Below, in pieces: positions 4,690-63,458 of a stretch of 64,000 nucleotides of DNA. The stretch is taken from IMG/VR virus record IMGVR_UViG_3300021963_000021, positions 1 through 64,000 of that record; one strand, given 5' to 3'. Below the pieces are notes generated by a model that saw only the letters and a program-made list of their open reading frames with translations, did not search any database and had not been told where the DNA came from. Position 1 is the first letter of the stretch; the number at the start of each line of letters is the position of its first letter. The position numbers were made by a program, and so were the translations under genes.

Positions 4690-4701
4690 TTGATCAGTGA
4701 C

Positions 4702-20016: not shown

Positions 20017-20018
20017 TT

Positions 20019-43864: not shown

Positions 43865-44118
43865 GTGTGTTGTCTATAAAAAATAATCCTCAATTTCAAA
43901 AGGATCTTGATCGATTCACAGAAGTTATAAATCAGCTTGATGGTGTCAAAAAGAATGAAGCTGAAAAACTGTTAAAAAGATTTATAGAGGCTATAAAAAG
44001 AATCGACGACACACTAGTAAATGTCAGTCTTGCTCCTGTTGATTATTCTTTTCACGTAGAAGCAAGAAGAGAACTAAAAAAGATTAGGCTCGATTTAGAA
44101 AATCTTTTACAGAAATAA
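43861..44118 (+). CDS. helical hypothetical protein
   Basis: 85-aa ATGA-coupled ORF. Confidence 0.65.
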   Translation: MSVLSIKNNPQFQKDLDRFTEVINQLDGVKKNEAEKLLKRFIEAIKRIDDTLVNVSLAPVDYSFHVEARRELKKIRLDLENLLQK

Positions 44119-44956
44119 ATCGATAATCGCCGATCACTGATTTTAATTTTTCTATATCAGCACAGGTATACTTTTGATATTGTCCTTCTAATTCGAAAGG
44201 AAACTCTATTTCTTTTATCGAAGCATCGTATTTCTTAGCAACAAGCTCAGCTACATCTTTAAAAGAAACTACTGCGCCTGTACCTAAATTGAATATGCCA
44301 CTGTGCCAATGGCCCACTGATAGTTTAATATTAACTATATCCTCTACGCAGATAAAGTCTCTTAGAAAATTCTCACTGCCTTTGAACACAAATACACTGC
44401 CTTCTACCTGCGCCTGTTGAGAAAACTTGTGTATAGGACTCGCCTGTGACCCTTTGTGCTTTTCACCGTTGCCGTAGACATTGAAGTATCTCCAGCCCTG
44501 TAACTTAGCTCTAGGGTTTTCTAATAATTTGATAGCTGTGTAGTAATCTATATCAGCTTTGCTTTGTGCGTACAAGGATCTAGGATCAAGAGGTTGATTT
44601 TCTTTAAAGCTCGGGCCGCTGCCATACACACTGGCAGAGCTAGCATATGACAAAAGAAAATCATGCTCGATTGCTTTATCTATAAGAAAAAATGTAGGAT
44701 TTTTATTTTTTCTTTGTATTAGATTTTTATCACGCTCTGTTGTACTAGATATCGCACCTTCGTGATATACTACTTCAACTGTGTGCCACTGATTGAAATT
44801 GTTATAGAACTCGTCAACAGTATGCCATTCAGAATAGGCCAGTTCTATATTAGCACGAGCATCATCGACACAGATAATGTCAGTGCGTCCTAGAGCATTT
44901 AATCCACGAACTAGATTAGATCCTATAAATCCTGCTGCGCCAGTGACTACAATCAT
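44084..44956 (-). CDS. hldD: ADP-L-glycero-D-manno-heptose 6-epimerase
   Basis: IVVTGAAGFIGSNLV, GAISSTTE, YASSASVYG, YAQSK, RYFNVYG..E.HKG.QAS. Confidence 0.9.
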   Translation of the reverse strand: MIVVTGAAGFIGSNLVRGLNALGRTDIICVDDARANIELAYSEWHTVDEFYNNFNQWHTVEVVYHEGAISSTTERDKNLIQRKNKNPTFFLIDKAIEHDFLLSYASSASVYGSGPSFKENQPLDPRSLYAQSKADIDYYTAIKLLENPRAKLQGWRYFNVYGNGEKHKGSQASPIHKFSQQAQVEGSVFVFKGSENFLRDFICVEDIVNIKLSVGHWHSGIFNLGTGAVVSFKDVAELVAKKYDASIKEIEFPFELEGQYQKYTCADIEKLKSVIGDYRFISVKDFLNRA

Positions 44957-45444
44957 CCCAGTGTCTGCTCCAACCAAGTCTTACAATTAGGCCAACTTCT
45001 GTAAATGTGTGCCCTACCACCAGCTCTAATCCATTCTTCGCAGTTACTATTGCGATCGTCAATTAAAATGTCACCTGGTTCTCTACAGTGCATGTATTTT
45101 TCGTAACTGTAAGGGCCAAGAAACACAGGTATGTGTGGAAAATGTTCTTGTGCCCAAAATACTTTATCCTGAGGTGCCCAGGGCATGTCGTTGCCTTTGG
45201 GAATAGCACTGAGAAAATAGAGACCGCAGCCTGTAATTGATTTATATGTTGTTACCCAATTGACTAATTCATATGCGCCTTCTTTGATTGGAAGTTTGCT
45301 GTACATACGCTGATCATCTTTGAGCCTACGCCAAGTTGAGTCAGGTAAAAGGTCACCGTCTTTAAACAAAGGTGCTTTTAGATAATCTCTAGCGTAGCCA
45401 TACCAATCAGCTACAACATCATCCATGTCTAGATATATGTTCAT
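44953..45444 (-). CDS. HAD-family phosphatase (5'(3')-nucleotidase-like)
   Basis: YLDMDDVVAD, DK..W, ILIDD..SN..EW..AGG. Confidence 0.8.
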   Translation of the reverse strand: MNIYLDMDDVVADWYGYARDYLKAPLFKDGDLLPDSTWRRLKDDQRMYSKLPIKEGAYELVNWVTTYKSITGCGLYFLSAIPKGNDMPWAPQDKVFWAQEHFPHIPVFLGPYSYEKYMHCREPGDILIDDRNSNCEEWIRAGGRAHIYRSWPNCKTWLEQTLG

Positions 45445-45833
45445 GATTTTTCTGCGTTTTCAAAAATCTGTTTCTGACTGTCACCTGGGATAATTCTGTA
45501 ATTGTCCTCTACACTGTCAGCAGTACTGACTTCAAACAGCATGGCATTGTCTGTTAATGCTTCTAGTTGGTGCGGCTGTAATGGAGGGTTATGCCATGTG
45601 TCGCCTTCGCTGAGATCTTTTTCAAACAGCACCGCACGTTCTGTATCTATCCAACGGACTTTAAACTTGCCGCTGTTAACAAACCATGTTTCGTCTTTGT
45701 CTTTATGGAAGTGCATAGAAAATTTATTTCCTGCCTTAGTAAAGCACAGTATTTTTCCGCAGTATTTTTCGTTGGTGGCAAATATTAATTCGTATCCCCA
45801 GCCTTTTTCTTGATAACCTTGTAATTGTGTCAT
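45441..45833 (-). CDS. cupin-fold sugar isomerase-like protein
   Basis: KGWG.E, SMHFH..KDET, PH, EVST...EDNYR..PGD. Confidence 0.82.
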   Translation of the reverse strand: MTQLQGYQEKGWGYELIFATNEKYCGKILCFTKAGNKFSMHFHKDKDETWFVNSGKFKVRWIDTERAVLFEKDLSEGDTWHNPPLQPHQLEALTDNAMLFEVSTADSVEDNYRIIPGDSQKQIFENAEKS

Positions 45834-46579
45834 TTTATTTCCTCTATTTTTGGAGCATAACAACCTACGTGCTGTACTGTTATTGACGCAGCGTTGTTGG
45901 CAAATTCTACTGCCGTTTTAATTTCTTTTGTTTCTAGATACATGTAGGCTAACGCAGATAAAAAAGTATCGCCTGCGCCTGTAACATCAACTACTTCAAC
46001 TGAGGGAGCAGGGGAAGAAATGTCATGATGCTTTATTATTGCGCCTTTAGCACCTTTGGTAACTATCAGTCCTGTACATTCAGATTTGATTTTACTATAT
46101 TCTAATTCATTGATCTTAACCCATGCGCCTTGTAATCGTTCTAGATCTGTTTTCTTTGTGTCAACAAACACAGGAATTCTAGTAGCTATGGCTTCCTCAA
46201 TAACATCGTAGGATACCGTACCTTTGTCGTAGTCGCTGATAACAATAGCATCATAGACTTTAGGTATTGCTGTCACAAACTCAATTGGGGTTGAGCTGGC
46301 ATCATTGTCTATTCTAACAATCTGTTGTTTACTGCGTATATCTATCAAGCGTGTCTTGGTTGAGCAGTCGCCGTGTAAGAAGTTAACTTCGCAGCCCAGT
46401 GCTTCTAGATTACGAGCAACATTGCCGGCCATACCTGGTTTTTGTTCTTCATGACTAAACTTAAACACAGGCACAGGTGCTTCCGGACTGATGCGATCCA
46501 CAGTGCCGTATTGATATATGTCAAGACAATTATCGCCGATCAATAATATCTTGTATCTTTTTTGTTGTTGAATAACCAT
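45830..46579 (-). CDS. D-glycero-D-manno-heptose-7-phosphate kinase (HldA/RfaE domain I, PfkB family)
   Basis: RISPEAPVP, GMAGNVA.N, SDYDKG, DVTGAGDT. Confidence 0.9.
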   Translation of the reverse strand: MVIQQQKRYKILLIGDNCLDIYQYGTVDRISPEAPVPVFKFSHEEQKPGMAGNVARNLEALGCEVNFLHGDCSTKTRLIDIRSKQQIVRIDNDASSTPIEFVTAIPKVYDAIVISDYDKGTVSYDVIEEAIATRIPVFVDTKKTDLERLQGAWVKINELEYSKIKSECTGLIVTKGAKGAIIKHHDISSPAPSVEVVDVTGAGDTFLSALAYMYLETKEIKTAVEFANNAASITVQHVGCYAPKIEEIK

Positions 46580-46925
46580 CGATTCTTTCAAAAAATTCTA
46601 TCCTTTTACAGACCTCTTCGCCTACTATAGGTTTTCCCTGCCAATCGGCACCCTTGACCATTACATCACAGTCTGCGATAAGATTTCTTAATTCGGTATC
46701 TGTTTCGAAAACTTTAACATCTGATACAGCTCTAAGGCTTTTTAACATTTTAGTACGTTCAAATTGATTATTAATTGGCCGACTGTGACCTTTTAATCTG
46801 CGTACACGCTCGTCAGAATCTATGCCCACGATTACCTCGTTACCGAGGCTCTGTGCGTATTCTAATAGTTCAATGTGTCCGACATGAAGTATGTCAAAGG
46901 TGCCATTCACAAAAACACGAGTCAT
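46530..46925 (-). CDS. heptose-1-phosphate nucleotidyltransferase (HldC/RfaE domain II)
   Basis: NGTFDILHVGH, LKG..RPIN...R, KGADW, GYSTT. Confidence 0.9.
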   Translation of the reverse strand: MTRVFVNGTFDILHVGHIELLEYAQSLGNEVIVGIDSDERVRRLKGHSRPINNQFERTKMLKSLRAVSDVKVFETDTELRNLIADCDVMVKGADWQGKPIVGEEVCKRIEFFERIDGYSTTKKIQDIIDRR

Positions 46926-46964: not shown

Positions 46965-49900
46965 TTAGGCTTGCGCTTCTGCCCAACGTAGAATAATGTT
47001 AGCTGGTGTAGCTGTTCCAGATACCTTATACACGTTGATAGCCAAAACGTCTGGTCCGTTCGGGAATGTACCACGTCCGCCTAACGCAGTTGTAGTCAAT
47101 TCTTTAAGTTCGCCTAGGTTCAACGCATCAGTTGATCCTGGGTTTGTAATGAACGAGAAGATCGTTTCGCCCGGTAGCGCATATGGTGGTAAACCAAATT
47201 GGAACTGTACTGTGGTAGACCCTCCAGTAACCACAACGTTAGTAGTTTGTGTAAAGGTTACTGTATAATATGGCGTTCCTGAGAATGTCTGTAATGTGCT
47301 CACTGACTGTACACGAGTACCAGCAGGGAATTTGGTTTCAGTTGTGGCAACTTCAGTGTTAGCCGATGCTCCAGACGATTCCCACGATGCTTGTGTAAAG
47401 TAAATCGTAGAAGTGTTAGCAGTTGACTGTGCTAGCTGGAATGTGATGTTATTGGTGTTGCTAATTGCGCTGGTCGATGCTCTACTAAATGACAGTGTAT
47501 AATACAGTGTAGTATTAAATGTCACTGTTCCGCTAGCAGACACAACGGCTGTATTTCCTGCGTTAAATGTCACAGCATAATAACTAGTACCAGCAAATGT
47601 TCTCAGTGTGCTCACAGAGCTAATTTGAGTACCGCCGCCAAATTTAGCATCGTTAGTTGTCTGACCTGCGATAATATCAACAGGTAACGCAGCCCAACTT
47701 GACTGTTGGAAGAAGTGTATAGTATTTCCAATTGCTCTAGTACCAGCAAATCTAAATGATACTGTCGAGTTATTATTAACTTGACGGAGTGTTGATGTGC
47801 TAAAGCTCACGGTGTAAAACCCACCACTTGGGCCTGTTACTGCTGTAACATAAGTTCCATCAACAAACAACGACGTATCATTAGTAAAGATATCAGTAGC
47901 AGTAGTAGAACCTTGTAGTGCTGCCCACGAAGCCTGTAAGAAATATAACACATTGCTTGGAGCACCAATAGTAAACGCAGATACTGATGTTGATTGTAAT
48001 AATGGTAAAGTAGTTGCTGTTGGATTTGGGCTGTCTGTCTTGCCAGATACTGTAGTACCCGACGGAAACTTAACGTCATTAACAGATTGTCCTACCACGG
48101 CAGCAATGCTGTCCCAACTGGTTCTTGTCACATAAGCAATAGTAGTACCGCTAGATCTATTAAATGCTGCGCCAGTTGGCACAGTGGCATTACCAGTTAC
48201 AGTACCTAATGCTGTAGCAGTAGTAAATGTATACGAGCCACCACCTGCCCAGTTAACAGAACCGCCAGGAGCAATCTGTGCGAAGCTAGGCTGTCCACCT
48301 TGCGCTAGTCCGTTTAATTTACCCCAGGTAATATCTCCTGGGTTAGTTGGATAGTTTTGTGGATTCAACACACCTTCAATAACCACTCCGCCAGTGCCTG
48401 CGTCTGAAGCGATTGAAATCTCTTTCAATAACAACTGCGCTCTGTTTAACAGTTCACGCTCGCCTAGATCTCCAACAACAGCGTTAGACACGCTAGGTGC
48501 TAGTCGAATCAAGAACACAGTCTTTTTAGTAGTCGAAATTGAGTTACCAGTTGATGTATAACTGAATAGATAACCGCGGTCTTCGTCAAATCTACCGTCT
48601 GTCAAGAACGCAGAACCCCAGTGACTAATCAAAGGTGTTGTTGTATTTGTTAATAATATTACACCTGTTCTTGATGTATGTGATGTAGCTATACCTGCTC
48701 GGTAACTTCTTAACGCACCAGATTGATAGTTAGTTAACTGTGCTGCTCGAGTAGCGCCAGTTAAGGCTGTCGCTGTTTTACCTGAGTAACTGATTAATTC
48801 ATTATCGACATAAACTACACCCGTGTCTGGATAGAACTGAGTGTCTTCAATAGGAATAGTTGTGTCTAAGGCAGTTATGTCAGCAGTTAGTCTTTCAGCT
48901 GGGCCATAGTTAGCTACCTCGTATCGCACTGGCAAGTTACCAGTTCTCATGAACGCTTCTGAGTTCACGTTACTGTTACGCATACGATGAGCAAAAACAA
49001 AGTTACCATCTCCGCCACGTAGCATAAAGTCAATAAATCCAGCACCGTACCAAGTATATTGGATACCGATCATCTGCATTTTTGTAATATCAACATCGTA
49101 GCCGCTAGGACCGGTACCGTCTAGTCTGTCTCTATTGAACTGACTCTGAGGGACACGTTTATCAAACACCAAACAGATCTTAGTTCCGCTGACTGCGCTG
49201 ACTCCTCTGAAGTCTGGATTCACAGTCATTGAAGTGTTAGATGCTACCGCCGTGACTACGTGAGTCATTCCCTTAACTACCACAAAGTCGCCTGCTTTGA
49301 CTTGATCTAAGAATCGAGAGTTACTACCAGTTATGGTATTACTACCAGGCAATATAGAAATCGTGCCAGCTAGCTGCTTGGTAGCAGTTCTTTGTACAAC
49401 TGCTAGTTCAGTGCCGTTATATTCCCAAAACACACCGTTTTGATCATCAAACGCACCTGCTCTAACTACTGCGCCTTTCCAATTTAACGTTGATACCTGA
49501 CAGCTGAATCCTAGTGTTGGAATTTTTGAACCTAATCGTCTAACTGCCTTAACTCGGAACACTCGTTCACTGACAATTTCGTCAACTGTGTAATCTTCAC
49601 CAGGATAAAATTCATTACCACTGTCATATCCTGGAGTATCTACTCCAGTGATACGCACCACAGCACCTGCTTGGAATCCGTGATCGTTTTCGTCTAGAGT
49701 AATTGTTATAGTAGAACCGACTTCCACTCCATCAGAGACAATATTCTGTATGTCGTAACTAGGGGCAAATAGCGCACCGGTGGTGTACATCATGCCTTTA
49801 CCAGATTGGTAACGAATGTATTTTTTACTTTGACGTATTGCCTGTACACCGTGCTGCGGACCGCCTGTGCCTAGTTGTACACCACCGTCGAAGGGTCTAT

Positions 49901-52900
49901 GTGTAAAGAAGCTGTCTGGTCTAGCATAGACTCTACCAGTAATAGTGCCAGCAATAGTACCCGATGCTCTGGCCTGATAGCTTAGAGCTGTTGCTGTTGG
50001 TATTGAAGTTGCTGTATATGATCCGCCGGCAAGTGTATGATTGTTAGAACCGTTGTCTGAAGATGGCACAACAATAAAGGCTCCGCCCGGTGGTATACCA
50101 TGCGCTGCTAAGAAATCTATACGTATCGTTGCCAACGCAGCATACGTCAATGTCGTTGATGAAGGCACAGCTCCTGTTGTGAATTCACTGACAGTGATTG
50201 CTGAATACAGCGAGAATGTAGTACCTGCTGAAGCAGTATGCGATCCTACAGTTATGTTAACAACTCCGCCTAGGGTAACATTTGAAACAGTTAGAACAAC
50301 ATCGTTAGTTGGACTTGCGCCACCAAGGGTAGCACCTGATAACTGTATCTTATTACCGATGTAATAATTAGTCCCGCCAGTTGCTGCTACTACAGAACTG
50401 TATGCGCTGCTAGATCTTGTTAGATTAAATGTTGCTCCGTTGCCTCTAGAAGCTGTGTTTGTTCCAGCCACTCCTGTGTAGGTAATTTGATAACTGGCAG
50501 TTCCAGAAACGCTAGCTTCTGTAATCGCGCCAGACTGGTTACTTGCTGCGCCTGTTACAGAGAAGTTTGTTATACCGCCAGTGACATTAGCTGCTGTCAC
50601 TGTGATTGTTAAATCGTTGGCTGTTGTTGAACCACCTAACTGTGTACCGTAGATCGTTAATGTATCTGCGGAATTATAACCAGATCCTGGGTTTGTTAGA
50701 GTCACAAAATATTCAGTGCCGTTCCTGATAACAGTAAATGTCGCTGCTGACCCAGTACCAGAAGTCAGGTCTTGAATAATGCTAGTGTAAGTAGCTGAAA
50801 CTTTAGATACTGTAATAGTAGCGTTATTTGACGGTGTTGATCCGTAGGTAAATGTTGTCCCAGGAACTGTAAACGATTCACCTGCTGAATAATTTGAACC
50901 GGCAGTGGTAACGTTAACTGTATAAGCGTTGCTGCGAGTTATTGAAAACACAGCACCTGTGCCTGCTGCCGAAGTTGTATAAACAGTGCTATCAATGCCA
51001 GTTACTGTTTGATTAGCAATGGCAAGAGCTGTTCCTTGGATCACTGTCACGGCTGAGATAGCACTGCCTGATAATGTTTCAACGTTTAGATACAGGTCGT
51101 TGGCTGTGGATGTTCCACCGAGATCTGTACCTAGTATTACGATAGTGTCACCAACAGCGTATCCGGATCCTCCGGCATTAACTGTTACTGTAGAATAGTT
51201 AGTAGTGTTATCTCGCAAGACATTAAATGTTGCGCTAGATCCTGTGCCTACAACGTTAGTACCTGCTATACCTAGATAGTTAACATTATTACCTTTGATG
51301 CTAGCAGTCAAAGGATCTGTAAACACTAATGTAAGGCCCTGTATATCCGAAATGAATATGTTATTACCTGATCCGTCGTTGACTGCTAGACCAATTTGTA
51401 CACCGACTGTGCTGGTCACATCAACTTGTGTAGTTCCAGAAGGATAATCGGCGGTCAATAAAGGTGTTGTCACAACACCTCCAGTACCAAGCACTGAAGT
51501 TATCTGTGAACCTACACCGAGATTCGTACCGGTTATAGGAGCACCAATTTCTGGTGCTGTGCCTGTGAACGCAAATCTATTAGAACCACTCGGTGCTGCT
51601 AATGATGTTGTCACTGTACCGCTAGTACCGTTGCTGATAACGGAAAATGTTGGTGTACCAATTTCAGCACCAGTATAAAAACCGCCTTGACGTACCTGTG
51701 AAAATGCTGTGGCCAATGCTGTGGGATTGCTCGATCCTACTCGTGCTTTGGCATAGTATGTAAATGATTTAGTAGTCGGTACTGAAGTAACAATAAATGA
51801 CCCCTCAGCACGTGAAACTCCACTGATAGCCTGAGTAAGACCTCTCACAGTAATAGGCTGACCAACAGCAAATCCGTGTACAGCGTTTGTCGTTACTGTA
51901 ATCAAACTGCCGCCGATGCCACTGGTGCCCACTGACGCATCTGAAACAATGCTAACTATATCTTGATCAGTACCCGGGACTTCATAGATACTTGGATATC
52001 CTCTCGCTACTGCGATAGCCTGCCACTTGGTTGGCTGTAAGCCGTATTCAAAGTCAGCGTCAAGCATGGCCTGCGGCGGAGCAACACGCATACGTTCAAT
52101 AGCATCTGTGCCAAAGTCGTATGGACGTACTGACATATCTTTGGTTTCTACAAATATCTGTATCTCATCATCTTCGGTCATTGAAGATGTGTCACAGTTT
52201 AATTTAATAGTCGTTACACCGTCAGTGGCCTGTAAGAATTTTACAAAGTCCTCGTCTTCAACAGTCTCTTGTGTAACGGTTCCGCCGATAGCAGGATTAG
52301 AGAAATTATAAATGATTACGTTTGCGGTCGTGTTTGTGATCAATAATAGATCATCACTACCAGCTTTACCTTGGAATTTAATTCTACCATAGGTGTTTGG
52401 AATTGCTGCTGCTAACAAGCTCAGACCGCCAGGAATAACAGTTAACACTATATTAGATAGTTCTACAATTCTCGCGGCAGCTCCTGCTTCTGGAGATCCA
52501 GTCAATACAACCTGAGGTGTAGATGTCTGGTATGGTACAGTTCTATATGAAGGATACGAAGGCAACGAACTAGTGCCAACCAACAATAGATTAATTAATA
52601 AATCCGATAACGCAGTGATTCGTGTTGTAGCACCTGTTTCAGCGAACGGAGATGTTCTAACCTGAGCATAGGTATTCTGGAATGACGGAGCAGCTATACC
52701 TGTTAAAATATAGTTGTTTATAGTGTTTCTTAAAAACGTATGAGCATAAGCTTCTGGATATCTATCGCCGTCAACTTGTGCTTCGTTTCCATAATAGTAT
52801 TTTGATACAACACGATATGTTTCTTCATTTCCATTGTATTGTAAGTCATAGATGTATGCGTCGATAACATAACCGGAATCTCTAATACACTTAGCACTGT

Positions 52901-54791
52901 CAAATGTATATCCTTGGAAATCTACCACGCTGTTAACTATAGTTGTCTTAGCCGATGCTATAGCTGTCTTAGCTGTTTGTAGTGCTGTGACAGCAAAAGT
53001 CACGCTAGGTACAGTTCTTGCTATTCCGCTTAGATATGAATTAGCCTGTGACTGTGTTGTACAGGCAACTACATCTTTGGTTATCTGTACCAGACCCTCT
53101 AATATTGTAGTTTCAGTATTGCTGGCGTTTGCGCCAGTTATTGTCTGAGACAGTGTATTTGGTGTAGACCCAGTGACTGTTTTTGTTATAGATATACCTT
53201 GAACAATTTGACCTATTATAGTTTTCAGTCTTCCGTAGGCATCTACAGTCTGTAATCTATGCGTTGGATCAATGCCCGGAGCTCCGTTAGCAAAACCATA
53301 GAAGAAGAATTTTGCTTGGTCATAGGTCGCAGCATTGCCACCATATAGAATATCATAACATAGCGCATCAATGGCATATTTGACATCTCGAGTACACTTA
53401 GCTTCGTCGTGATTATGTGTGGGATATGCGTCAGCTACCCAAGCATTGACTTCTGCTGCTATAAAGTTTTTGTTGGCAATCAGTTTGTCTTTGGCTGCGA
53501 TTTGATTTGCTGTGGCCGAACTTGGATTTGTGAACGTCACTGTATCAGCATTAGCTCTGCCGTTAGTAGCAATATCTCTAACTTCACTAAAGAAATTATT
53601 AGATCTTGTAACTGCTAGTGTACTTGCTGAAACACCGGCTAGTGCTGCTACTTCTAGTCCGGCTCTACGAATAGTATCTAACACGATAAAATCGTTGTCA
53701 AGAGCATTGTATTCTGCTAGTCCAAGGAACACAGCATTATAATTAGTGCCTAGGGCTATGTCGTATTGAACACCATCTATTAGATAACCAATATCTCGAA
53801 CACACTTGCTGGCTGTATCGATTTGATCTTGTATCCAAGCAGTGACTTCATATTGTAGATATTGTTTGTTAGCAGTTAACAAACGAACTGCTTCGTCGTA
53901 ATCTTCTGTGCCTACAATATTTTCAATGATATTGCTGTTAATTCTTTCTCGAACAAATCGATGTGCTTCAACTTCAGCTTGGCCGCTGCCGTCAACTTGT
54001 AGAGTATCTCCGTCGTAATAGACCTTAACAATATCCGTGATTGCTTCTGTACCGTCGTATCTTAAATCGTTTAGATACGCATCAAGTACAAATCCAAAAT
54101 CTCTTTCGCACTTGGCATTGCTGTAAGTGTAGTTTTCGTAGGTAGATGCTTTATATTGTATAGTCGGTAATGCGCTGAGTCCAGTGCTAATTACATCTTT
54201 GGTTATTTGTATTAATGTAGAAACTTTAGCAAATGATTGTACTTCAGCAGATGGTCCAGTTCTATACTGTGTGTAAGTTCCCTGATAAGAAGAAGCCGCA
54301 GTAGTTGTTAGGATGTTATTCTGTATGAGAGAATTTAAAAATGTGTAGGCCGCAACTTCTGGGGTTCTTGGTCCGTCAATTTGTGGACTAGATCCAATCC
54401 AGTAGTAGGTCGCTATTCTTCTAGTTTCTTCGTTACCGCCATATCGCAGATCATGGATATAGGCATTGATATTATTGGTTACGTCATTTAGACACTTTGT
54501 TGCGTCATAGGTATAACCGGAAAATGGTGCTATGCTGTTTGTTATCTGATACTGTATCCAAGCAACAACTTCATATTTCATATAGTTGATATTATTGGTC
54601 AGTAAGCGATAAGCTTCTGGATAGTAGTTAAACGCAGTATCAACAGTTATTCTTCTGTTGATGAATGCTGATAACTCTTTCTTTAGATGTTCTTTGTTAG
54701 CTGCTATGCTGGCATAGGCACTTGGAAACAAGTTATCAGTGTAACTTATTCCCGGTCTAAAAACGTAATTATTAATTTTTTTCTTTGCCAT
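46965..54791 (-). CDS. giant virion fibre/baseplate protein (2608 aa): N-terminal helical KCxRD repeats, Thr/Ser/Gly beta-repeats, lectin-like domain
   Basis: Five KCx(R/N)D repeats; about four GSGY..GD.I.I.GT.LGG repeats; RQSKKYIRYQSGK...YTWYGAG domain; lies among tail genes. Confidence 0.75.
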   Translation of the reverse strand: MAKKKINNYVFRPGISYTDNLFPSAYASIAANKEHLKKELSAFINRRITVDTAFNYYPEAYRLLTNNINYMKYEVVAWIQYQITNSIAPFSGYTYDATKCLNDVTNNINAYIHDLRYGGNEETRRIATYYWIGSSPQIDGPRTPEVAAYTFLNSLIQNNILTTTAASSYQGTYTQYRTGPSAEVQSFAKVSTLIQITKDVISTGLSALPTIQYKASTYENYTYSNAKCERDFGFVLDAYLNDLRYDGTEAITDIVKVYYDGDTLQVDGSGQAEVEAHRFVRERINSNIIENIVGTEDYDEAVRLLTANKQYLQYEVTAWIQDQIDTASKCVRDIGYLIDGVQYDIALGTNYNAVFLGLAEYNALDNDFIVLDTIRRAGLEVAALAGVSASTLAVTRSNNFFSEVRDIATNGRANADTVTFTNPSSATANQIAAKDKLIANKNFIAAEVNAWVADAYPTHNHDEAKCTRDVKYAIDALCYDILYGGNAATYDQAKFFFYGFANGAPGIDPTHRLQTVDAYGRLKTIIGQIVQGISITKTVTGSTPNTLSQTITGANASNTETTILEGLVQITKDVVACTTQSQANSYLSGIARTVPSVTFAVTALQTAKTAIASAKTTIVNSVVDFQGYTFDSAKCIRDSGYVIDAYIYDLQYNGNEETYRVVSKYYYGNEAQVDGDRYPEAYAHTFLRNTINNYILTGIAAPSFQNTYAQVRTSPFAETGATTRITALSDLLINLLLVGTSSLPSYPSYRTVPYQTSTPQVVLTGSPEAGAAARIVELSNIVLTVIPGGLSLLAAAIPNTYGRIKFQGKAGSDDLLLITNTTANVIIYNFSNPAIGGTVTQETVEDEDFVKFLQATDGVTTIKLNCDTSSMTEDDEIQIFVETKDMSVRPYDFGTDAIERMRVAPPQAMLDADFEYGLQPTKWQAIAVARGYPSIYEVPGTDQDIVSIVSDASVGTSGIGGSLITVTTNAVHGFAVGQPITVRGLTQAISGVSRAEGSFIVTSVPTTKSFTYYAKARVGSSNPTALATAFSQVRQGGFYTGAEIGTPTFSVISNGTSGTVTTSLAAPSGSNRFAFTGTAPEIGAPITGTNLGVGSQITSVLGTGGVVTTPLLTADYPSGTTQVDVTSTVGVQIGLAVNDGSGNNIFISDIQGLTLVFTDPLTASIKGNNVNYLGIAGTNVVGTGSSATFNVLRDNTTNYSTVTVNAGGSGYAVGDTIVILGTDLGGTSTANDLYLNVETLSGSAISAVTVIQGTALAIANQTVTGIDSTVYTTSAAGTGAVFSITRSNAYTVNVTTAGSNYSAGESFTVPGTTFTYGSTPSNNATITVSKVSATYTSIIQDLTSGTGSAATFTVIRNGTEYFVTLTNPGSGYNSADTLTIYGTQLGGSTTANDLTITVTAANVTGGITNFSVTGAASNQSGAITEASVSGTASYQITYTGVAGTNTASRGNGATFNLTRSSSAYSSVVAATGGTNYYIGNKIQLSGATLGGASPTNDVVLTVSNVTLGGVVNITVGSHTASAGTTFSLYSAITVSEFTTGAVPSSTTLTYAALATIRIDFLAAHGIPPGGAFIVVPSSDNGSNNHTLAGGSYTATSIPTATALSYQARASGTIAGTITGRVYARPDSFFTHRPFDGGVQLGTGGPQHGVQAIRQSKKYIRYQSGKGMMYTTGALFAPSYDIQNIVSDGVEVGSTITITLDENDHGFQAGAVVRITGVDTPGYDSGNEFYPGEDYTVDEIVSERVFRVKAVRRLGSKIPTLGFSCQVSTLNWKGAVVRAGAFDDQNGVFWEYNGTELAVVQRTATKQLAGTISILPGSNTITGSNSRFLDQVKAGDFVVVKGMTHVVTAVASNTSMTVNPDFRGVSAVSGTKICLVFDKRVPQSQFNRDRLDGTGPSGYDVDITKMQMIGIQYTWYGAGFIDFMLRGGDGNFVFAHRMRNSNVNSEAFMRTGNLPVRYEVANYGPAERLTADITALDTTIPIEDTQFYPDTGVVYVDNELISYSGKTATALTGATRAAQLTNYQSGALRSYRAGIATSHTSRTGVILLTNTTTPLISHWGSAFLTDGRFDEDRGYLFSYTSTGNSISTTKKTVFLIRLAPSVSNAVVGDLGERELLNRAQLLLKEISIASDAGTGGVVIEGVLNPQNYPTNPGDITWGKLNGLAQGGQPSFAQIAPGGSVNWAGGGSYTFTTATALGTVTGNATVPTGAAFNRSSGTTIAYVTRTSWDSIAAVVGQSVNDVKFPSGTTVSGKTDSPNPTATTLPLLQSTSVSAFTIGAPSNVLYFLQASWAALQGSTTATDIFTNDTSLFVDGTYVTAVTGPSGGFYTVSFSTSTLRQVNNNSTVSFRFAGTRAIGNTIHFFQQSSWAALPVDIIAGQTTNDAKFGGGTQISSVSTLRTFAGTSYYAVTFNAGNTAVVSASGTVTFNTTLYYTLSFSRASTSAISNTNNITFQLAQSTANTSTIYFTQASWESSGASANTEVATTETKFPAGTRVQSVSTLQTFSGTPYYTVTFTQTTNVVVTGGSTTVQFQFGLPPYALPGETIFSFITNPGSTDALNLGELKELTTTALGGRGTFPNGPDVLAINVYKVSGTATPANIILRWAEAQA

Positions 54792-54800
54792 TTTTCTCTC

Positions 54801-55352
54801 TTAGGCTCCAAACGCTACCGCAAAAGCGACAACGGAATTGTCTACATAATCTTTTCTTGCCGGATTGGCTGCTAATGTAGGAACAGGGATTAGCATACCA
54901 TCGACAAATGTCACTATACCACTTATATCTGCCCCAGACGCTGAAATTTCAGCGTTGTCAGCATTTAAACTTCCTGGGGAGACACCATTACTTACCACAT
55001 CTATTTGGTAGGCCGTGACCTGTCCTGGCGTTAGTGTACCAATATCTACATTATTAATAGTTCCTCTGGTCAAGCTGTTAATAACTACACGACCAGAAAC
55101 AACTGAAACTCTGTTTACCCCACTGCTTCTTAAATATACATCGCCATTAGTTTGTAACTGAGACAACACACCTATAGTTTCAAGGCTGCTGTTTTTAATT
55201 GTGTTGCTAAGGGCAGTTAAATCAGTTGAGAATGGATTGCCATAAGAACCTATGCTGAGAGTATTTGCGGTAAGATTACCGTTCTCATCAACATAGAACC
55301 CTGGACTTTTAAATCCAAAATCTGACTTTAATGTTTTTTGTCCTACAGTCAT
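54801..55352 (-). CDS. short fibre-like virion protein
   Basis: TINNVDIG, ARKDYVD motifs typical of fibre shafts; late box 55366-55371. Confidence 0.6.
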   Translation of the reverse strand: MTVGQKTLKSDFGFKSPGFYVDENGNLTANTLSIGSYGNPFSTDLTALSNTIKNSSLETIGVLSQLQTNGDVYLRSSGVNRVSVVSGRVVINSLTRGTINNVDIGTLTPGQVTAYQIDVVSNGVSPGSLNADNAEISASGADISGIVTFVDGMLIPVPTLAANPARKDYVDNSVVAFAVAFGA

Positions 55353-55368
55353 AGTTTATCCAGAGTAT

Positions 55369-56922
55369 TTATAGCCTGCCCACAACCACTTCTATAACGC
55401 CTTCGACGCCATCAAAGTTTTCTAGAGCCTTGCCGATTACGGTTCCGACTTTTGGGTCACTTGAAGGTCTAGCATATCCACCACCACTTGCGACCATCAT
55501 ATCACCTTTGTGGATTTTTCCTCGAACTTTACATGGCACACGCCCTTGTAATGCCAACGGAACTACATGTTTGCCTTCTAAATGACCATTCATTAAATGC
55601 GCAGGCTGTGTAGAAACAATGCCTGCTACACGTCTTGTTTCGTCTGATGCTACGGTTACTTCATAGTCTCCGCCAAATTCTAATACTGTTCCGGGTTCGT
55701 AGGCAGCATCTGCCAAATAATTTTCTGCCAAGTCCGCCCATTGTGCTTGTGTTGATGTAACTGTAAGAACATCAGTTGCTGTATTCAATGTCACTGTGCT
55801 CTTAGCATAAAGAGACTGCCCAGATACAGAGTCTGTTCCTGTAGAAAGCACCAACGGATATGAGCCAGTACTAACAGCCTGTACAATTACAGCCTGTGCT
55901 GTTCCGCCACTTCCGCCTCCACCACCAGAGGACGAAAAGGTTATAGTATCAGAAGCAGCATTGGTAGTAATAGTCATGCCTGTGCCTGCTACAAATGTCA
56001 ACGTGTCACTTGCTCTTTCAGCTATGACATTGGATTGTCCAGATACCGCAATAGTAGTAAAAGAATTACCAGAAGATACTGTTCCGCCACCTCCGCTGCT
56101 AGATCCGCTGCTGCCTGTGTTGGTAATAGTAATTGAATCCGTCAATGGATCTGTAATAATACTGATTCCAGTACCGGCAACTAGTGTAACTCTATCATTT
56201 GGTGTTTCGGCTACTACATCAGATTCGCCTGCTACAGATATTTTATTAAAATAGGTAAATGCCTGACCACCTATAGTCGAACCTGCGGGTACTTCTATGG
56301 CATTTGAACCTGTGCTAGATATTACTGCGCCATTTAGATTTAACACACCACCTAGGTATAAATTGTCCCAAGGTGCTGCTGCGGTCCCAAGATCGTGAAC
56401 AAATCCTAAATCTGGAATTATATCTCTGTCAACAGCGCCTAGATTTATAGTCGAACCACCTCCAGATATAGGAGGTCCACCTGGTGTTGGGTCAGGTACT
56501 AAAAAGGTAGGACTCTGAGGACGCTCAATGGCATTAAGAACTCCAGAGTAATGTGCTCTATATATGGCTTTCAGACCGTTGTAGTCAGCAATTTTTGGTG
56601 ATAGTTTCAGTGACAGATAACTGTCGTTGACTTCTACAGACACATCAACTAATTCGTCATCAATAGCTACACGACCAACAATAGAATAGTTGGCATAATC
56701 GGGTCTAGCTACAACTAGGACTTGAAGTGTTTCTTTTTTGTTAGAATTAAATTCTAAAGAAATTTGATAGCTAGCACTGGCAAAGTCGCCTACATACCAG
56801 CGATCAATTTCAGTAGAATCAAAGATTTGAATCCAGGGCCCTTTGTGGAGAAAATTGACCCCATTTTTAAACTGTAGGGTATTTTTTACATTAGGTATAA
56901 AATAATTGTTAAAATCGGTCAT
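55369..56922 (-). CDS. tail fibre protein with C-terminal chaperone/peptidase-like domain
   Basis: Duplicated IAVSGQS.V.A....DTLT.VAGTG repeat; ADLAENY...GRVPCKV...IGKALE C-terminus. Confidence 0.8.
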   Translation of the reverse strand: MTDFNNYFIPNVKNTLQFKNGVNFLHKGPWIQIFDSTEIDRWYVGDFASASYQISLEFNSNKKETLQVLVVARPDYANYSIVGRVAIDDELVDVSVEVNDSYLSLKLSPKIADYNGLKAIYRAHYSGVLNAIERPQSPTFLVPDPTPGGPPISGGGSTINLGAVDRDIIPDLGFVHDLGTAAAPWDNLYLGGVLNLNGAVISSTGSNAIEVPAGSTIGGQAFTYFNKISVAGESDVVAETPNDRVTLVAGTGISIITDPLTDSITITNTGSSGSSSGGGGTVSSGNSFTTIAVSGQSNVIAERASDTLTFVAGTGMTITTNAASDTITFSSSGGGGGSGGTAQAVIVQAVSTGSYPLVLSTGTDSVSGQSLYAKSTVTLNTATDVLTVTSTQAQWADLAENYLADAAYEPGTVLEFGGDYEVTVASDETRRVAGIVSTQPAHLMNGHLEGKHVVPLALQGRVPCKVRGKIHKGDMMVASGGGYARPSSDPKVGTVIGKALENFDGVEGVIEVVVGRL

Positions 56923-56966
56923 AGCTCGCTCGGGGTTATTATGTATTTAACAGATTTTATCCATAA

Positions 56967-56993
56967 TAAAAAACCCCCTTGCGGGGGTCTTTA
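56967..56993 (-). terminator. intrinsic terminator
   Basis: ACCCCC-GCAA-GGGGGTTTTTT. Confidence 0.88.
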
Positions 56994-56994
56994 A

Positions 56995-58821
56995 TTAGCT
57001 ATTTGCTATTTTTACCAACTTACCGTATTCTGGCAAGTATAGGTATTCAATATCGCTGCGTACTAGCGTATCTATAGCATCATCTAGTGTTTCTACTAGT
57101 GGGTCGCCACCTAAATTAAAGCTGGTGTTAAACAAGATAGGAATACCTGTTTCTTCTTTGAATGCTTTGATTAGATCATAGTAATGTTTGTTTTGCTCTT
57201 GTGTAACTGTCTGTATACGACAAGTGCCATCAACGTGAATAATACTTGGGATCTTTTCAGCAATACCGGGCTTACAATTTACAGCATACATCATGTGAGG
57301 GCTTGAACCCATTCCTCGCAGATCAAACCACTCATGAACATCGTCTTGTAGAATAGATCCTGCGAAGGGTCTAAAATACTCGCGACGTTTGACCATGTTT
57401 ACGAAGTCTTTTCCATCTTCAAAAGTTGGATCAAAAAGCACACTTCTGTTACCAAGTGCTCTAGGACCGTTCTCACTGCGTCCTTGGAAAATAGTAACAA
57501 TATTTTTTTCACGCAACAATTTAACAACATCTTTATGTGTAGCATCAGTCATTGTTCCGTCTGCAAACTTAACTTTTTCTTCTATTTCATCGACAGTGTA
57601 GATCTGTTCTGGGCCAAGATACAGCGTATCTAACTTGTGAACAGTCATGTTATCATCTAAAGCATGCCAGAACATCAAAGCAGCACCCATAGCAGTACCA
57701 GCATCATTGGAAATTGGTTCTACATAAATTTCGATGCCGTCTTTTTCTAAATGTTCTAGATAGAAATAATTGGCCACACAGTTTAGGCCGTAGCCGCCAC
57801 TGATAACTACACGCTTCTTGCCGCTCATTGCTGAGGCTTTACGAATCAAATTCAGTACCTGTTCCTGTGTCTGAGTTTGTACAGCATAGGCCAAGTCTCT
57901 TCTATTCTGTAGTGTAGTCACATCAGTTTTTTCATCTGTAGGATTTTCATCTAAGAATTCAAACATATCTGCGTTAACTGTAGAACTTGACGGATACATT
58001 GGTATGATCAAATTTCTATTTGACACAGGAAACTTTGCGTTAGATTCAAACAGCGGAGGAATCTTATCGTTAGGTTTACCATATGGAAATAGTCCCATAG
58101 TTTTTCCAGCTTCGATAGCTGAAAATCCACAGTACTCAGTTACACCTTCGTAGGTCTTAACAATGCCAGCACGGTCTGTTACCCATGCTTCGTGTGTTTC
58201 GCCCTGTTCACCAAATTGGTCAGAAGCTAACTTGTCATAATACTGCGCAGGAATACCTTCTCTAGTTCCATAGTGTTTATACAATGTTTTAAACTGTGAA
58301 GGATAGTTACAGTCAACAATAGATTCTACTTCATACGACCATATCTGTTGTCCGTTAAATGACAGTGGAATAAAAGTTCCTGCTCCGTCAACAATAAGTG
58401 CTACAGCATCTTCCCATCCTGAACGATAAAACGCACAGGCAGCATGTAGTTTGTGATGCATAAAGCTGAGATCAATAATCTGTGGGTGATTATAGATATT
58501 GGCTTTACGATCAATTAATCCCATCTTACGAGCTAGACCAGTATAGACATCGTCACCGGTATAGTCGACTCTGCCAGCTGTGTCGCCAAGTTTTTGTGTG
58601 TGAGCAATGATCAAATAATCTAACTTGTCTGTATATTCTAAAATTTTCATTATAGACGCATACGGACCGCCGTCATACTTGTGTCTTGTTAGTCGTTCTT
58701 CCTCAATAGAAAATACGATTTCACCATCTTTTAATAAGCAAACACCAGCATTATGGCCACGAGCTACGGCTGCGATCCAACCGCTTTTTAATCTTGGAGT
58801 TAAATCTTGTTGTTCGTTCAT
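56995..58821 (-). CDS. carbamoyltransferase (NodU/CmcH family), full length
   Basis: EEERLTR.K, HHKLHA, DGAG, GKTMGL, GPRALGNRS, KRREYFRPFA, HVDGT.R.Q, NTSFN. Confidence 0.93.
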   Translation of the reverse strand: MNEQQDLTPRLKSGWIAAVARGHNAGVCLLKDGEIVFSIEEERLTRHKYDGGPYASIMKILEYTDKLDYLIIAHTQKLGDTAGRVDYTGDDVYTGLARKMGLIDRKANIYNHPQIIDLSFMHHKLHAACAFYRSGWEDAVALIVDGAGTFIPLSFNGQQIWSYEVESIVDCNYPSQFKTLYKHYGTREGIPAQYYDKLASDQFGEQGETHEAWVTDRAGIVKTYEGVTEYCGFSAIEAGKTMGLFPYGKPNDKIPPLFESNAKFPVSNRNLIIPMYPSSSTVNADMFEFLDENPTDEKTDVTTLQNRRDLAYAVQTQTQEQVLNLIRKASAMSGKKRVVISGGYGLNCVANYFYLEHLEKDGIEIYVEPISNDAGTAMGAALMFWHALDDNMTVHKLDTLYLGPEQIYTVDEIEEKVKFADGTMTDATHKDVVKLLREKNIVTIFQGRSENGPRALGNRSVLFDPTFEDGKDFVNMVKRREYFRPFAGSILQDDVHEWFDLRGMGSSPHMMYAVNCKPGIAEKIPSIIHVDGTCRIQTVTQEQNKHYYDLIKAFKEETGIPILFNTSFNLGGDPLVETLDDAIDTLVRSDIEYLYLPEYGKLVKIANS

Positions 58822-59762
58822 TTCTTATGTTTTCCTAAAACAGCATCAACGACATAATCTATAATTTCAGGCGTCATTGACATTAGATTTTCATGCTTTC
58901 TATCTATACGTTCGTCCATTGTAATACGTATAGGGCTGTATTCACGCAGTTCTTCGCCCATGTCTAATACATTAAAGTTTTTGGCATTAGGATATGAAAC
59001 GTTTATAGGATAGGTAGAACCAAATACCACAGTTGATGGCTTATCCATTGCGTAGGCCAAGTGCTGGCCTAGACTATCACAACCTAAGAAATGATCTGCG
59101 TATTTGATTACAGCAGCCCATTGACGTATACTGATATTTTCAGGGAACGCAATTTCATCTTTGATAGTTTTTTCTTGAGTTAGGTCTAGTTTTATTTCGC
59201 TCATCATTATTACAGCAAATCCTTTTTCCTGTAACTTCTGTATGATTTTCTTAACATCTTTGTATTCAATACTGCGAGCAGTTCTGTCTACAAACGATTC
59301 GTCGAGATATTCTATGCCTCTACCAAACGGCTGGAATACAATTACTTTTTCTTTTTTTAATTTCTTTTTAACTTCAGCAATTAGTTGACGACCGGCAATT
59401 AATTCATCCTTGCTGAGTCTCAACGTAGGTCTTGGTAATTCTCTAATACCCTGCTTGTTTAATTCGATATCAATGGCTTGGCTAATACTACATTTTTGAT
59501 TGTAATATTCCCAGACACGATACGGTTCAATTGTGTAGATATCTTTGTCTTTGAGTTTCTCTACGAACAGATTCTTGTGCCAAACGTCATAGGTTCTAGC
59601 ATCAAGGGTGGGGTGTCCTTTAAACACATCTGTGCCACCTTCGCAAACGATAATAAAATCTTTATCTCCGGACTCTTGTTCGTACTTTTCAAAAGCAGGT
59701 ACTGAACAAAGCATACGGCCTGCGCCGCCATTAATAAAGAATGCTTTAGAGCGTTTTTCCAT
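58818..59762 (-). CDS. GT9-like (ADP-heptose-type) glycosyltransferase
   Basis: GGAGR, VFQPFG, IKYADHFLGCDSLGQHLA, STVVFGST. Confidence 0.7.
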   Translation of the reverse strand: MEKRSKAFFINGGAGRMLCSVPAFEKYEQESGDKDFIIVCEGGTDVFKGHPTLDARTYDVWHKNLFVEKLKDKDIYTIEPYRVWEYYNQKCSISQAIDIELNKQGIRELPRPTLRLSKDELIAGRQLIAEVKKKLKKEKVIVFQPFGRGIEYLDESFVDRTARSIEYKDVKKIIQKLQEKGFAVIMMSEIKLDLTQEKTIKDEIAFPENISIRQWAAVIKYADHFLGCDSLGQHLAYAMDKPSTVVFGSTYPINVSYPNAKNFNVLDMGEELREYSPIRITMDERIDRKHENLMSMTPEIIDYVVDAVLGKHKK

Positions 59763-60507: not shown

Positions 60508-61470
60508 TCAAAAGAATCTAATGCGTACAGCACCATGACCGCCACGTCCTGCGTGATCTCTATGGTCTGGACAAGGTCTCGGTGCCCACCCACCAATTCC
60601 CGGTGGAATGTAAGGAGTACAGCCCTGCATTTCATAACAGCCACATGCTCGGTCTGAACGCCAGCAGTAACTCATTGGAATTCCTACCTGCGGACTTCTT
60701 GACATAGCAGCCACAGCATTCATGGACTGCATTTTTCCTTGACCGTTCATACCGTTTGAGTGTCTGTTATCGTCCTCGGTTTGCCAAGAAGCAGCACCAC
60801 CGTTACAGCCGTATAATCCAGGAGGCGCAGCGACCCAATACTGGAAGCAACAGGTACATGTTGGTTGACATCCGTTAAACGATGTACAACTAAATGCGCC
60901 ACAGCAGTTAACATCGCCGCCAAATCCGCAGGCAATCCAAATACCTGAGAAGTAATTACAGATCAAACCGCAGTTATCATTATATGGTCCACGAGCACAA
61001 TAGCCGTTAGCAGCAAAACAGCAGAACAAAGAAGTACCTGTTGAGCAGAAAGAACGGCCGCCTGCCCCACCTTGGGCGCACATACAGCCGTTAGCACCAG
61101 CGGCTCCTTGCCAACATAGGGCAGTTGAATCTGAACATCCTCGGAAACAGATAGCATCTGCGTTACCGCAGCTCATTCCAACACCGCCGCAGATAGTTTT
61201 ACCTGCGCAAACTGATATTGTTCTCTTAGAATACGCACCAGCATTACCTGGCAATCCGCCACCGCAGCAGCACATACGAGCACCACTACCACCGGCACCC
61301 CATATTTCTATGACTGCTGTGCCTGTGCCTGGTGCTATCCAGCAAAATCCTGTACATAAGTTAGTGTAAAAAGTAGATGGCGTATAGACCCAGATTCTAC
61401 CCTGTTGGATATTGTCTTCTTCTCTACCTATTGATCGCTGTCTAACCAGCATTTGTAATGATGACGGCAT
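60508..61470 (-). CDS. Gly/Cys-rich virion protein, paralog A
   Basis: EIWGAGGSG...GGHGAVRIRF glycine-rich domain; about 33 Cys in 320 aa. Confidence 0.75.
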   Translation of the reverse strand: MPSSLQMLVRQRSIGREEDNIQQGRIWVYTPSTFYTNLCTGFCWIAPGTGTAVIEIWGAGGSGARMCCCGGGLPGNAGAYSKRTISVCAGKTICGGVGMSCGNADAICFRGCSDSTALCWQGAAGANGCMCAQGGAGGRSFCSTGTSLFCCFAANGYCARGPYNDNCGLICNYFSGIWIACGFGGDVNCCGAFSCTSFNGCQPTCTCCFQYWVAAPPGLYGCNGGAASWQTEDDNRHSNGMNGQGKMQSMNAVAAMSRSPQVGIPMSYCWRSDRACGCYEMQGCTPYIPPGIGGWAPRPCPDHRDHAGRGGHGAVRIRFF

Positions 61471-63283: not shown

Positions 63284-63458
63284 GCTCAATCACAGCAGTA
63301 CCGCAGGTAGGGGCAATCCAGCACATGGTAAACTGTGAAAAGTCGTTGCCTGGTGTATAAACCCAAACTCTTCCTCTTTCTAAATTTTCTTCAGCGCCTG
63401 CTGAGGTATAGAAAGAGTTAGTCTTGGTTCCTATCAGGCTTTTAAATGATGTTGGCAT
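62484..63458 (-). CDS. Gly/Cys-rich virion protein, paralog C
   Basis: Same framework incl. ARMCCCG. Confidence 0.75.
   Translation of the reverse strand: MPTSFKSLIGTKTNSFYTSAGAEENLERGRVWVYTPGNDFSQFTMCWIAPTCGTAVIELWGAGGSGARMCCCGGGLPGNAGGYAKKTIRMNAGCFICGSVGYACGNEGLCFKGCSDASGLYWYGNCGASGCMCAQGGLGGRQMCSTGTSLFCCFVNQGFCFSGPYNDNCGLICNYFGGAWIGCGFGGDVNRCGGFSCTLFAGCLPQCPCSFHYHVAIPPGQYAKCGGVAVFTTEDGNEFSNWSGQGAHQHVSALSAASKKPNSGIPFAYNWGFGGGCGCYENEGCSGHIPPGHPGSAGAPCPGVRDQGRRGGHGMIRIKFIEGF

Follow-up and report, generated by a model that had tools for sequence, protein, structure and literature searches.

We identified an array of putative bilin-binding domains in a giant virion protein encoded by viral DNA of IMG/VR record IMGVR_UViG_3300021963_000021, positions 1 to 64,000 of which were analysed (the window, meaning this whole 64-kb stretch). 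The first ~720 residues of the protein are predicted to consist of five tandem copies of an all-α domain of about 110-130 residues. Taking sequence searches, profile comparison and structure prediction together, this domain very probably has a phycobiliprotein-type fold, and we are only slightly less confident of a common ancestry with the bilin-binding globins. Phycobiliproteins and related proteins are known from cells, where they are antenna proteins or small bilin-binding proteins. Full-text literature searches returned no published description of such domains in phage proteins, and for phycobiliprotein-like domain arrays in phage virion proteins we likewise found no prior description, the known relatives being cellular proteins. 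Because the phage domain keeps the bilin-attachment motif and occurs, among sequenced phages, only in cyanophages, the analysis suggests that virions with these domains may carry bilin pigments. We give about even odds (roughly 0.5) to the reading that each domain would bind a bilin during assembly in a bilin-rich host, yielding a fibre studded with chromophores.

The domains occupy the N-terminal part of one intact open reading frame, and their borders were set by a hidden Markov model (HMM) built from the five repeats and iterated on homologues. Coordinates are those of the window:

46965..54791, minus strand: intact open reading frame of the giant virion structural protein, 2608 amino acids (aa), from the reading-frame call and PHROG matches.
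54246..54626, minus strand: phycobiliprotein-like domain 1, residues 56-182, motif KCLND, Cys100 codon at 54492-54494 (HMM E=1.3e-30).
53895..54221, minus strand: phycobiliprotein-like domain 2, residues 191-299, motif KCERD, Cys228 codon at 54108-54110 (HMM E=2.8e-19 and AlphaFold2 model).
53541..53903, minus strand: phycobiliprotein-like domain 3, residues 297-417, motif KCVRD, Cys330 codon at 53802-53804 (HMM E=2.9e-19 and AlphaFold2 model).
53124..53507, minus strand: phycobiliprotein-like domain 4, residues 429-556, motif KCTRD, Cys466 codon at 53394-53396 (HMM E=3.6e-34; the copy modelled singly).
52641..53006, minus strand: phycobiliprotein-like domain 5, residues 596-717, motif KCIRD, Cys635 codon at 52887-52889 (HMM E=2.2e-26 and AlphaFold2 model).
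46968..52388, minus strand: C-terminal 1807 residues, a β-rich, Ser/Thr/Gly-rich virion-structural module, from homology to cyanophage virion proteins.

Five of the ten Cys residues in the protein lie within K-C-x-x-D motifs (KCLND at residues 99-103, KCERD at 227-231, KCVRD at 329-333, KCTRD at 465-469 and KCIRD at 634-638). A sequence-only reading of this DNA had already picked out the five motifs, and their Cys codons start exactly where it placed them, at 54494, 54110, 53804, 53396 and 52889. The unit that it quoted, AAKDKLIANKNFIAAEVNAWVADAYP...EAKCTRDVKYAIDALCYDILYGGN...TVDAYGRLKTII, corresponds to residues 432-525, and the phycocyanin α sequence that it gave for comparison is essentially right when set beside Acaryochloris CpcA, which includes WYVEALKYIK. 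In pairwise alignments the five repeat units are mutually 28-43% identical, with K, C and two D invariant. Four of the five domains have C-x-R-D; in domain 1 the Arg is replaced by Asn (C-L-N-D), and domain 3 is a variant subtype with an 'LGTNYNAV' continuation. Helices of domain 1 in the AlphaFold2 model span residues 58-66, 68-84, 97-117, 121-128 and 142-160. The domain HMM detected nothing significant in the C-terminal 1807 residues, nor did it find a phycobiliprotein-like domain in any further open reading frame of the 64-kb window.

The protein as a whole matches the PHROG families phrog_5838, 'virion structural protein' (E=2.5e-240), and phrog_4527, 'short tail fiber' (E=1.4e-19, five matched stretches). 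Its C-terminal module is 41% identical, over 80% of the length, to a virion structural protein of Synechococcus phages S-CAM1 and S-CAM3 and is matched by 175 phage records, nearly all of them cyanophages. On the strength of homologues annotated as cyanophage virion structural, tail-fibre or gp7 baseplate-wedge proteins, and of its position near the gp13, gp15 and sheath genes, we infer that the giant protein probably resides in the virion tail. By eye, the C-terminal module contains two more repeat series, at residues ~1150-1560 and ~2200-2560, one of ~90-aa units ('GSGY..GD.I.I.G..LGG...ND') and the other of ~100-aa units ('F.QASW'); a blastp self-comparison did not report them at E<=1e-3.

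Kinship with phycobiliproteins emerged from profile searches of 177,635 distinct PDB sequences. With a profile of the five repeats, the ten best matches were phycocyanin α chains (E=0.005-0.05) and phycobiliproteins made up 22 of the 41 matches at E<=10. Profile positions 4-66 align with residues 38-104 of the phycocyanin chain, placing the repeat Cys on Cys84. Domain 4 alone matched four PDB sequences, every one a phycobiliprotein. A Pfam scan of the whole giant protein gave no match to the phycobiliprotein family PF00502 at E<=1. When 71 diverse domain copies (pairwise identity <=42%, mean column identity 20%) were scanned singly against Pfam, ten matched PF00502, with a best E of 3.9e-5, and this was the sole Pfam family matched by more than one copy; 21 of the 120 listed full-length homologues also carry a precomputed PF00502 call. 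Two other proteins surfaced in these searches and were set aside. Profile matches to anthrax protective antigen (positions 84-125, E=0.05-0.2) were gone with a deeper profile and are treated as chance, and the THAP4 haem-binding β-barrel (E=0.013-0.04, sub-threshold) is incompatible with the all-helical model.

We then compared the 71-copy alignment, by means of hhalign, with an alignment of ten genuine phycobiliproteins from cyanobacterial plasmids (CpcA, CpcB, CpeA, CpeB and allophycocyanin-like). The two aligned with 88% probability (P=3.1e-6) over 103 columns, covering phycobiliprotein residues 34-145, whereas reversing either alignment gave P=0.69-0.70. The parts before and after the motif, aligned separately, gave P=0.04-0.07 each.

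AlphaFold2 was run on domain 4 with phage-family sequences only and without templates. The resulting model (predicted local distance difference test score, pLDDT, 88.5; predicted template-modelling score, pTM, 0.75) has helices at residues 3-14, 16-30, 38-58, 62-73 and 84-105, which correspond to A, B, E, F'/F and G. Searched against 350,542 PDB chains with Foldseek, it returned phycobiliproteins as all of the top 50 matches, with template-modelling (TM) scores of 0.55-0.63 for most, probability ~1.0 and E-values of 0.04-0.15 for the top matches; among these 50 there was no other helical bundle and no other globin. Rank 13 was 8u0f_C, a 176-residue 'bacterial fluorescent protein' released in 2024 (TM 0.59), which may be a non-cyanobacterial bilin-binding globin. 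An 800-residue model (pLDDT 88.1, pTM 0.73) had phycobiliproteins as its sole high-probability Foldseek matches, at target-normalised TM 0.6-0.7. Structure matches in BFVD were tail proteins of S-WAM2, S-CAM1 and S-PM2 (E down to 1.7e-4, TM 0.66-0.73), and look-alikes in the ESM Atlas scored <0.8 and were uninformative. The sequence-only reading had proposed globin-fold, phycobiliprotein-related domains and had named AlphaFold with Foldseek on the N-terminal region as a check. The 800-residue model agrees with that proposal, which is supported by four partly independent tests: the PDB profile search, the PF00502 matches of diverse copies, hhalign, and AlphaFold2 with Foldseek.

Helices A, B, E, F'/F and G run in the same order in the phage domain model as in phycobiliproteins (PF00502; for example C-phycocyanin α, PDB 8z20_K and 1jbo_A, and phycoerythrin β, 1eyx_B). 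The two also have in common CXRD (Cys, any residue, Arg, Asp) on helix E, with the Cys at Cys84 and the wider pattern (K)-C-x-R-D-x-G-Y, an Asn at the A/B kink, an aromatic residue (Tyr) ahead of helix E, a Gly-Gly turn after it and V-x-A in helix G. Unlike phycobiliproteins, the phage domain is without the X-Y N-terminal hairpin, the hhalign match starting at phycobiliprotein residue 34, past X-Y, and helix H is absent (none in domain 4). Alpha/beta pairing in phycobiliproteins is mediated by D13, R93 and Y97, which are invariant in all ten of the genuine sequences compared; the phage domain has a conserved Asp opposite R93 and a variable position opposite Y97, and D13 is not conserved. The pattern indicates that chromophore contacts were retained and assembly contacts lost. 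The setting differs as well, phycobiliproteins being free α/β subunits of ~160 aa and the phage domains tandem arrays within giant virion proteins. Because they fall below the Pfam threshold and are without the X-Y helices and D13/R93/Y97, the phage domains are relatives, not members, of the phycobiliprotein family, and we file them as a new repeat-forming branch of the bilin-binding-globin kind.

The family is large. A word-indexed search turned up over 1014 giant proteins, 2000-4500 aa long, the 120 best homologues hold 1880 domain copies by HMM, with up to 24 per protein, and HMMER against 1.84 billion cluster representatives returned 1680 proteins at E<=0.001, with a maximum of 37 copies in a protein of 6382 aa. 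Array size in these giant tail-fibre/baseplate proteins ranges from 2 to 37 copies. Stand-alone single-domain proteins gave only nine matches, mostly fragments on ~1 kb contigs, so that a free-living intermediate was not found.

Conservation of the Cys-Arg-Asp triad across homologues, which had been put forward as a further check, is high: over 1894 copies the Cys is kept in 95%, the Arg in 95% and the Asp in 97%, and all three occur together in 1798. Where the triad is lost, it tends to go as a whole. Fifty-one copies are without the Cys, with Tyr (27) or Phe (20) in its place, and only 4% of them keep the Arg; other conserved positions are depleted too (Y118 in 25% versus 91% of other copies, T159 in 14% versus 85%, Asp at +14 in 57% versus 97%). 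The orthologue P0036 (2692 aa, 51% identical) is a natural 'site knock-out', the triad having been lost in three of its five domains (58-177, 299-403 and 430-548), where KCxRD is replaced by DTQQD, VTELV and TFAQD; these domains still match the model, and the triad is therefore dispensable for folding. We suggest that the triad is one functional unit, in which a bulky aromatic residue can apparently replace the Cys. Such a pattern of loss is as expected of a ligand pocket, and a cooperative structural network could behave similarly.

To map occurrence, we searched 50,697 phage records by tblastn. The N-terminus of the window protein found 32 records, Synechococcus phages only; S-PM2p091 as query found 350 phage records and a single 131-aa domain of MED4-213 found 345, all of them cyanophages. 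The records matched are labelled Synechococcus (278), 'Cyanophage' (54-59), Prochlorococcus (12) and 'Marine virus' (1), and the domain is present in about three quarters of sequenced T4-like Synechococcus phage records (332/~439); carriers include S-PM2, P-HM1 and P-HM2. The matched genes are annotated as tail fibre, short tail fibre, gp7 baseplate wedge or virion structural protein. The giant tail-fibre/baseplate proteins of T4-like cyanophages (S-PM2p091, gp7 of P-HM1 and P-HM2, the S-RSM4 'short tail fibre', PHROG 4527) are true homologues that share both the domain and CXRD, with five CXRD copies in S-PM2p091 (3338 aa) and at least two in the MED4-213 gp7-like protein. The window protein fuses the repeat array to the C-terminal module; S-CAM1 and S-CAM3 encode the two in separate genes. 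Database annotations of the homologues read 'tail fiber', 'structural protein', 'VrlC' or 'hypothetical', and none is phycobiliprotein-like.

In cellular genomes the domain is essentially absent. A single-protein query against the genomes of 185,579 cellular species found nothing, and a degenerate DNA pattern for KCxRDVGYIxDA, run on the same genomes, hit four loci, all domain arrays of 36-40% GC content on contigs in proteobacterial assemblies. Low GC and discordant coverage mark these four loci as mis-binned phage DNA. Three contigs of the metagenome-assembled genome 'Rhodobacteraceae bacterium Water_Bin34' (FZLS01000013.1, FZLS01000008.1 and FZLS01000012.1), at 67x, 5.7x and 88x coverage, 37-40% GC and with 8-10 copies each, are almost certainly phage contigs mis-binned into a bacterial genome.

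How the domains might come to carry a pigment can be outlined from precedent. CXRD is the chromophore-binding motif of phycobiliproteins, in which the Cys joins ring A and the Arg and Asp bond other parts of the bilin (PMC10151467). Bilin binding by the phage domains is plausible because CXRD globins self-assemble with bilins: the bilin biosynthesis-associated globins BBAG-1 and BBAG-3, which bear CXRD, bind several bilins without lyases (Rockwell, Martin and Lagarias 2023, PMC10151467), and most apo-phycobiliproteins bind bilins spontaneously in vitro, ApcE doing so autocatalytically (PMC2327270). As virions assemble in a cell with free bilins, the Cys of each phage domain would form a thioether with ring A of a linear tetrapyrrole, and the Arg and Asp would hold its propionate and pyrrole nitrogens. 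Attachment could be autocatalytic, as for BBAG-1, BBAG-3 and ApcE, or aided by a host or phage lyase, and the fibre would become a rod studded with chromophores, for which light sensing, photoprotection and rod stiffening are candidate roles.

Compared by description, BBAG-1 and BBAG-3 are, like the phage domains, non-antenna phycobiliprotein relatives with CXRD, and they provide a precedent outside phycobilisomes. They differ in being single-domain cellular proteins encoded beside haem oxygenase and pre-PcyA reductase genes, whereas the phage domains are repeated, belong to a virion protein and have no such genes in the 64-kb window. ApcE, the core-membrane linker LCM, shares with the phage protein the embedding of a phycobiliprotein-type domain inside a large multidomain protein, with autocatalytic bilin attachment (PMC2327270). 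Its single phycobiliprotein domain precedes linker repeats, and the protein belongs to the phycobilisome, not to a virion, and has no tandem globin array.

Several observations weigh against bilin binding, or against the kinship on which it builds. Domain 4 scores 13.2 bits against PF00502 (E=0.089), under the gathering threshold of 22.2 bits. Deleting the five K-C-x-R-D columns raises the hhalign P to 0.076, although the motif-deleted alignment keeps its register over 98 columns, and the deeper 71-copy profile has a best PDB match of E=0.017, compared with 0.005 for the five window repeats. Since motif deletion has this effect and the deeper profile brings no gain, sequence homology rests mostly on the CXRD motif, and the lack of gain means that homology is not proven by sequence alone. 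The claim, made earlier from the letters of the DNA, that the match spans several helices is supported by the predicted structure and only weakly by sequence. The AlphaFold2 fold could itself have been cued by the CXRD motif. Parts of the pocket that complete the phycobiliprotein site, namely helix H and the contacts of the neighbouring subunit, are missing. Some residues are conserved in the phage family but lack a phycobiliprotein counterpart (Asp at +9, 80%; Asp at +14, 97%; Asn at +20, 84%; Tyr, 91%; Thr, 85%), and these could form some other site, for instance one that binds a cation or joins two chains. The window showed no gene for a haem oxygenase, a bilin reductase or a lyase, as had been supposed of the latter two; the scan applied Pfam or PHROG to nearly all of its open reading frames of at least 100 aa and precomputed Pfam calls on orthologues to the rest. 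We found no report of pigmented cyanophage virions in the literature. Restriction to cyanophages could simply reflect the site of capture and not function, and a cyanobacterial host is no more than probable, because the terminase of the window (29551-31137) is closest, at 52%, to the jumbo phages PA5oct, Phosso and Atu_ph07 of Proteobacteria.

The main rival, less likely than bilin binding yet of sizeable probability, is that the domains are structural: rigid helical blocks of a fibre or baseplate arm, derived from a phycobiliprotein or bilin-globin and free of chromophore. The Cys, Arg and Asp, together with the family-specific Asp, Asn, Tyr and Thr, would then keep the rod together, either as a polar network or as a contact between domains or between chains. 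Arrays reaching 37 copies, in proteins as long as 6382 aa, do look like length-setting rod modules, and the pTM of 0.73 for the 800-aa model suggests that the domains pack as one defined body. A scaffold of this kind would also account for the family's own conserved residues, for the absence of bilin genes from the window and of pigmented virions from the literature found, and, if the network were cooperative, for loss of the site as a unit. It accounts less well for the triad. P0036 has lost the triad in three of five domains yet keeps the domains, so that the triad is needed neither for the fold nor for a viable protein; the larger Tyr or Phe in place of the Cys implies a cavity beside that residue and not tight packing; and what has been retained from phycobiliproteins is the set of chromophore contacts, not the assembly contacts.

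We consider it improbable that the site serves a different ligand, whether haem or another tetrapyrrole, a metal ion or a host-surface molecule, with the domains as receptor-binding units. The family-specific Asp, Asp, Asn, Thr and Tyr are reminiscent of sites that bind cations or sugars, and the giant gene lies among many glycan-synthesis genes. Receptor-binding units, however, are normally distal, C-terminal and variable, whereas the phage domains are N-terminal or internal with a nearly invariant site. The weak match to THAP4, which would speak for haem (E=0.013), is sub-threshold and to a β-barrel that the helical model does not accommodate. CXRD is specifically a bilin motif (PMC10151467).

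About equally improbable is convergence, in which an unrelated phage helical bundle with a chance KCxRD-like motif would have drawn AlphaFold2 and the profile methods to phycobiliproteins: the P of 0.076 without the motif columns, the marginal PDB E-values (0.005-0.02) and the Foldseek E-values (0.04-0.15) would allow it, but the register survives removal of the motif, the A/B-kink Asn, the Tyr before helix E, the Gly-Gly turn and the helix G V-x-A also line up, the helices agree with A to G of phycobiliproteins in number, order and length, the 50 best matching PDB chains are all phycobiliproteins, and the family is confined to phages of phycobiliprotein-making organisms.

The window protein and its orthologues, which share 55-90% identity across the first ~800 aa, are encoded on contigs of 310-367 kb, and the window phage is an uncultured jumbo phage of ~364 kb. 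The window encodes T4-type sheath, gp13, gp15, UvsX-like and gp32-like proteins, a helicase, a primase and the terminase. Twenty kb of it, compared with phages by megablast, gave no match. The carbamoyltransferase adjoining the giant gene is 61% identical to Synechococcus phage versions and has the same relative position as in S-CAM1 and S-CAM3. Since both this enzyme and the C-terminal module of the giant protein resemble Synechococcus phage counterparts, the host of the window phage is probably a cyanobacterium. Ancestry of the window looks mosaic, with the terminase (29551-31137) nearest proteobacterial jumbo phages, and the giant virion protein and adjacent carbamoyltransferase (within 46965-58821) nearest Synechococcus phages and in synteny with S-CAM1 and S-CAM3.

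The giant gene is surrounded by an unusually rich set of sugar and lipopolysaccharide-type genes (7470-8426, 16462-24458, 44084-46925 and 56995-59762). It comprises two carbamoyltransferases, glycosyltransferases of families GT2, GT25 (two), GT8 and GT9 (heptosyltransferase-like), an FkbM methyltransferase, epimerases/dehydratases, a fusion of mannose-6-phosphate isomerase and cytidylyltransferase, and a PfkB kinase with an adenylyltransferase (an ADP-heptose-like pathway). These genes could glycosylate the virion or remodel the host surface. Elsewhere in the window, three tandem paralogous open reading frames on the minus strand (60508-63458; 320, 332 and 324 aa) are mutually 52-58% identical and, like their orthologues, have no Pfam or PHROG assignment. 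A Bax1-I/BI-1 family membrane protein (Pfam E=2e-49) is encoded at 4003-4689 on the opposite, plus strand and adjoins a 2-oxoglutarate-Fe(II) (2OG-Fe(II)) oxygenase and a nucleotidyltransferase; GC content is 0.46-0.51 in window positions 1-6000 and ~0.40 elsewhere. An open reading frame of 146 aa with a TnsA-like endonuclease N-terminal domain (32739-33179, minus strand, E=1e-22) lies between the terminase and sheath genes and may be a homing-endonuclease-type insertion.

If the domains do bind bilins, the arrays might act as a light sensor of the phage, light absorbed by bilins on the tail fibre or baseplate changing its conformation and permitting adsorption; we regard this further step as unlikely. 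It draws on published reports, cited through PMC6628666, that S-PM2, P-HM1 and P-HM2 need light to adsorb and that P-SSM2, P-SSP7 and P-GSP1 adsorb in the dark. All three light-requiring phages carry the domain. P-SSM2 has no copy at E<=10 in 149 kb covering all its structural genes and is absent from the tblastn matches of the domain, as are the podoviruses P-SSP7 and P-GSP1. The correlation covers about three independent lineages, a small sample. P-HM1 and P-HM2 further possess genes for CpeT, PebS and Ho1, and the roles of phage cpeT, pebS, pcyA and ho1 'remain a mystery' (PMC3037559). Association of the domain with cpeT is imperfect among the part of Sullivan 2010's 16 phages that was compared: Syn1 has the domain and no cpeT, whereas P-SSM4 and P-SSM7 have cpeT and apparently no domain.

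Bilin binding, if true, would mean that cyanophage particles are pigmented. We know of no phage virion with a photoactive cofactor, and the domain arrays would be the first if bilin is bound. Were the light-sensor reading true as well, the virion would offer a substrate for the orphan phage genes cpeT, pebS, pcyA and ho1. The domains would also be a source of small, monomeric and possibly self-attaching bilin-binding scaffolds, potential fluorescent tags. If bilin is bound, two old questions would become testable through them by ordinary experiments: the light dependence of cyanophage adsorption, and why cyanophages carry bilin-synthesis and lyase-like genes. Even if the domains bind nothing, they would still be a clear case of a host photosynthesis fold captured and rebuilt as a virion structural module.

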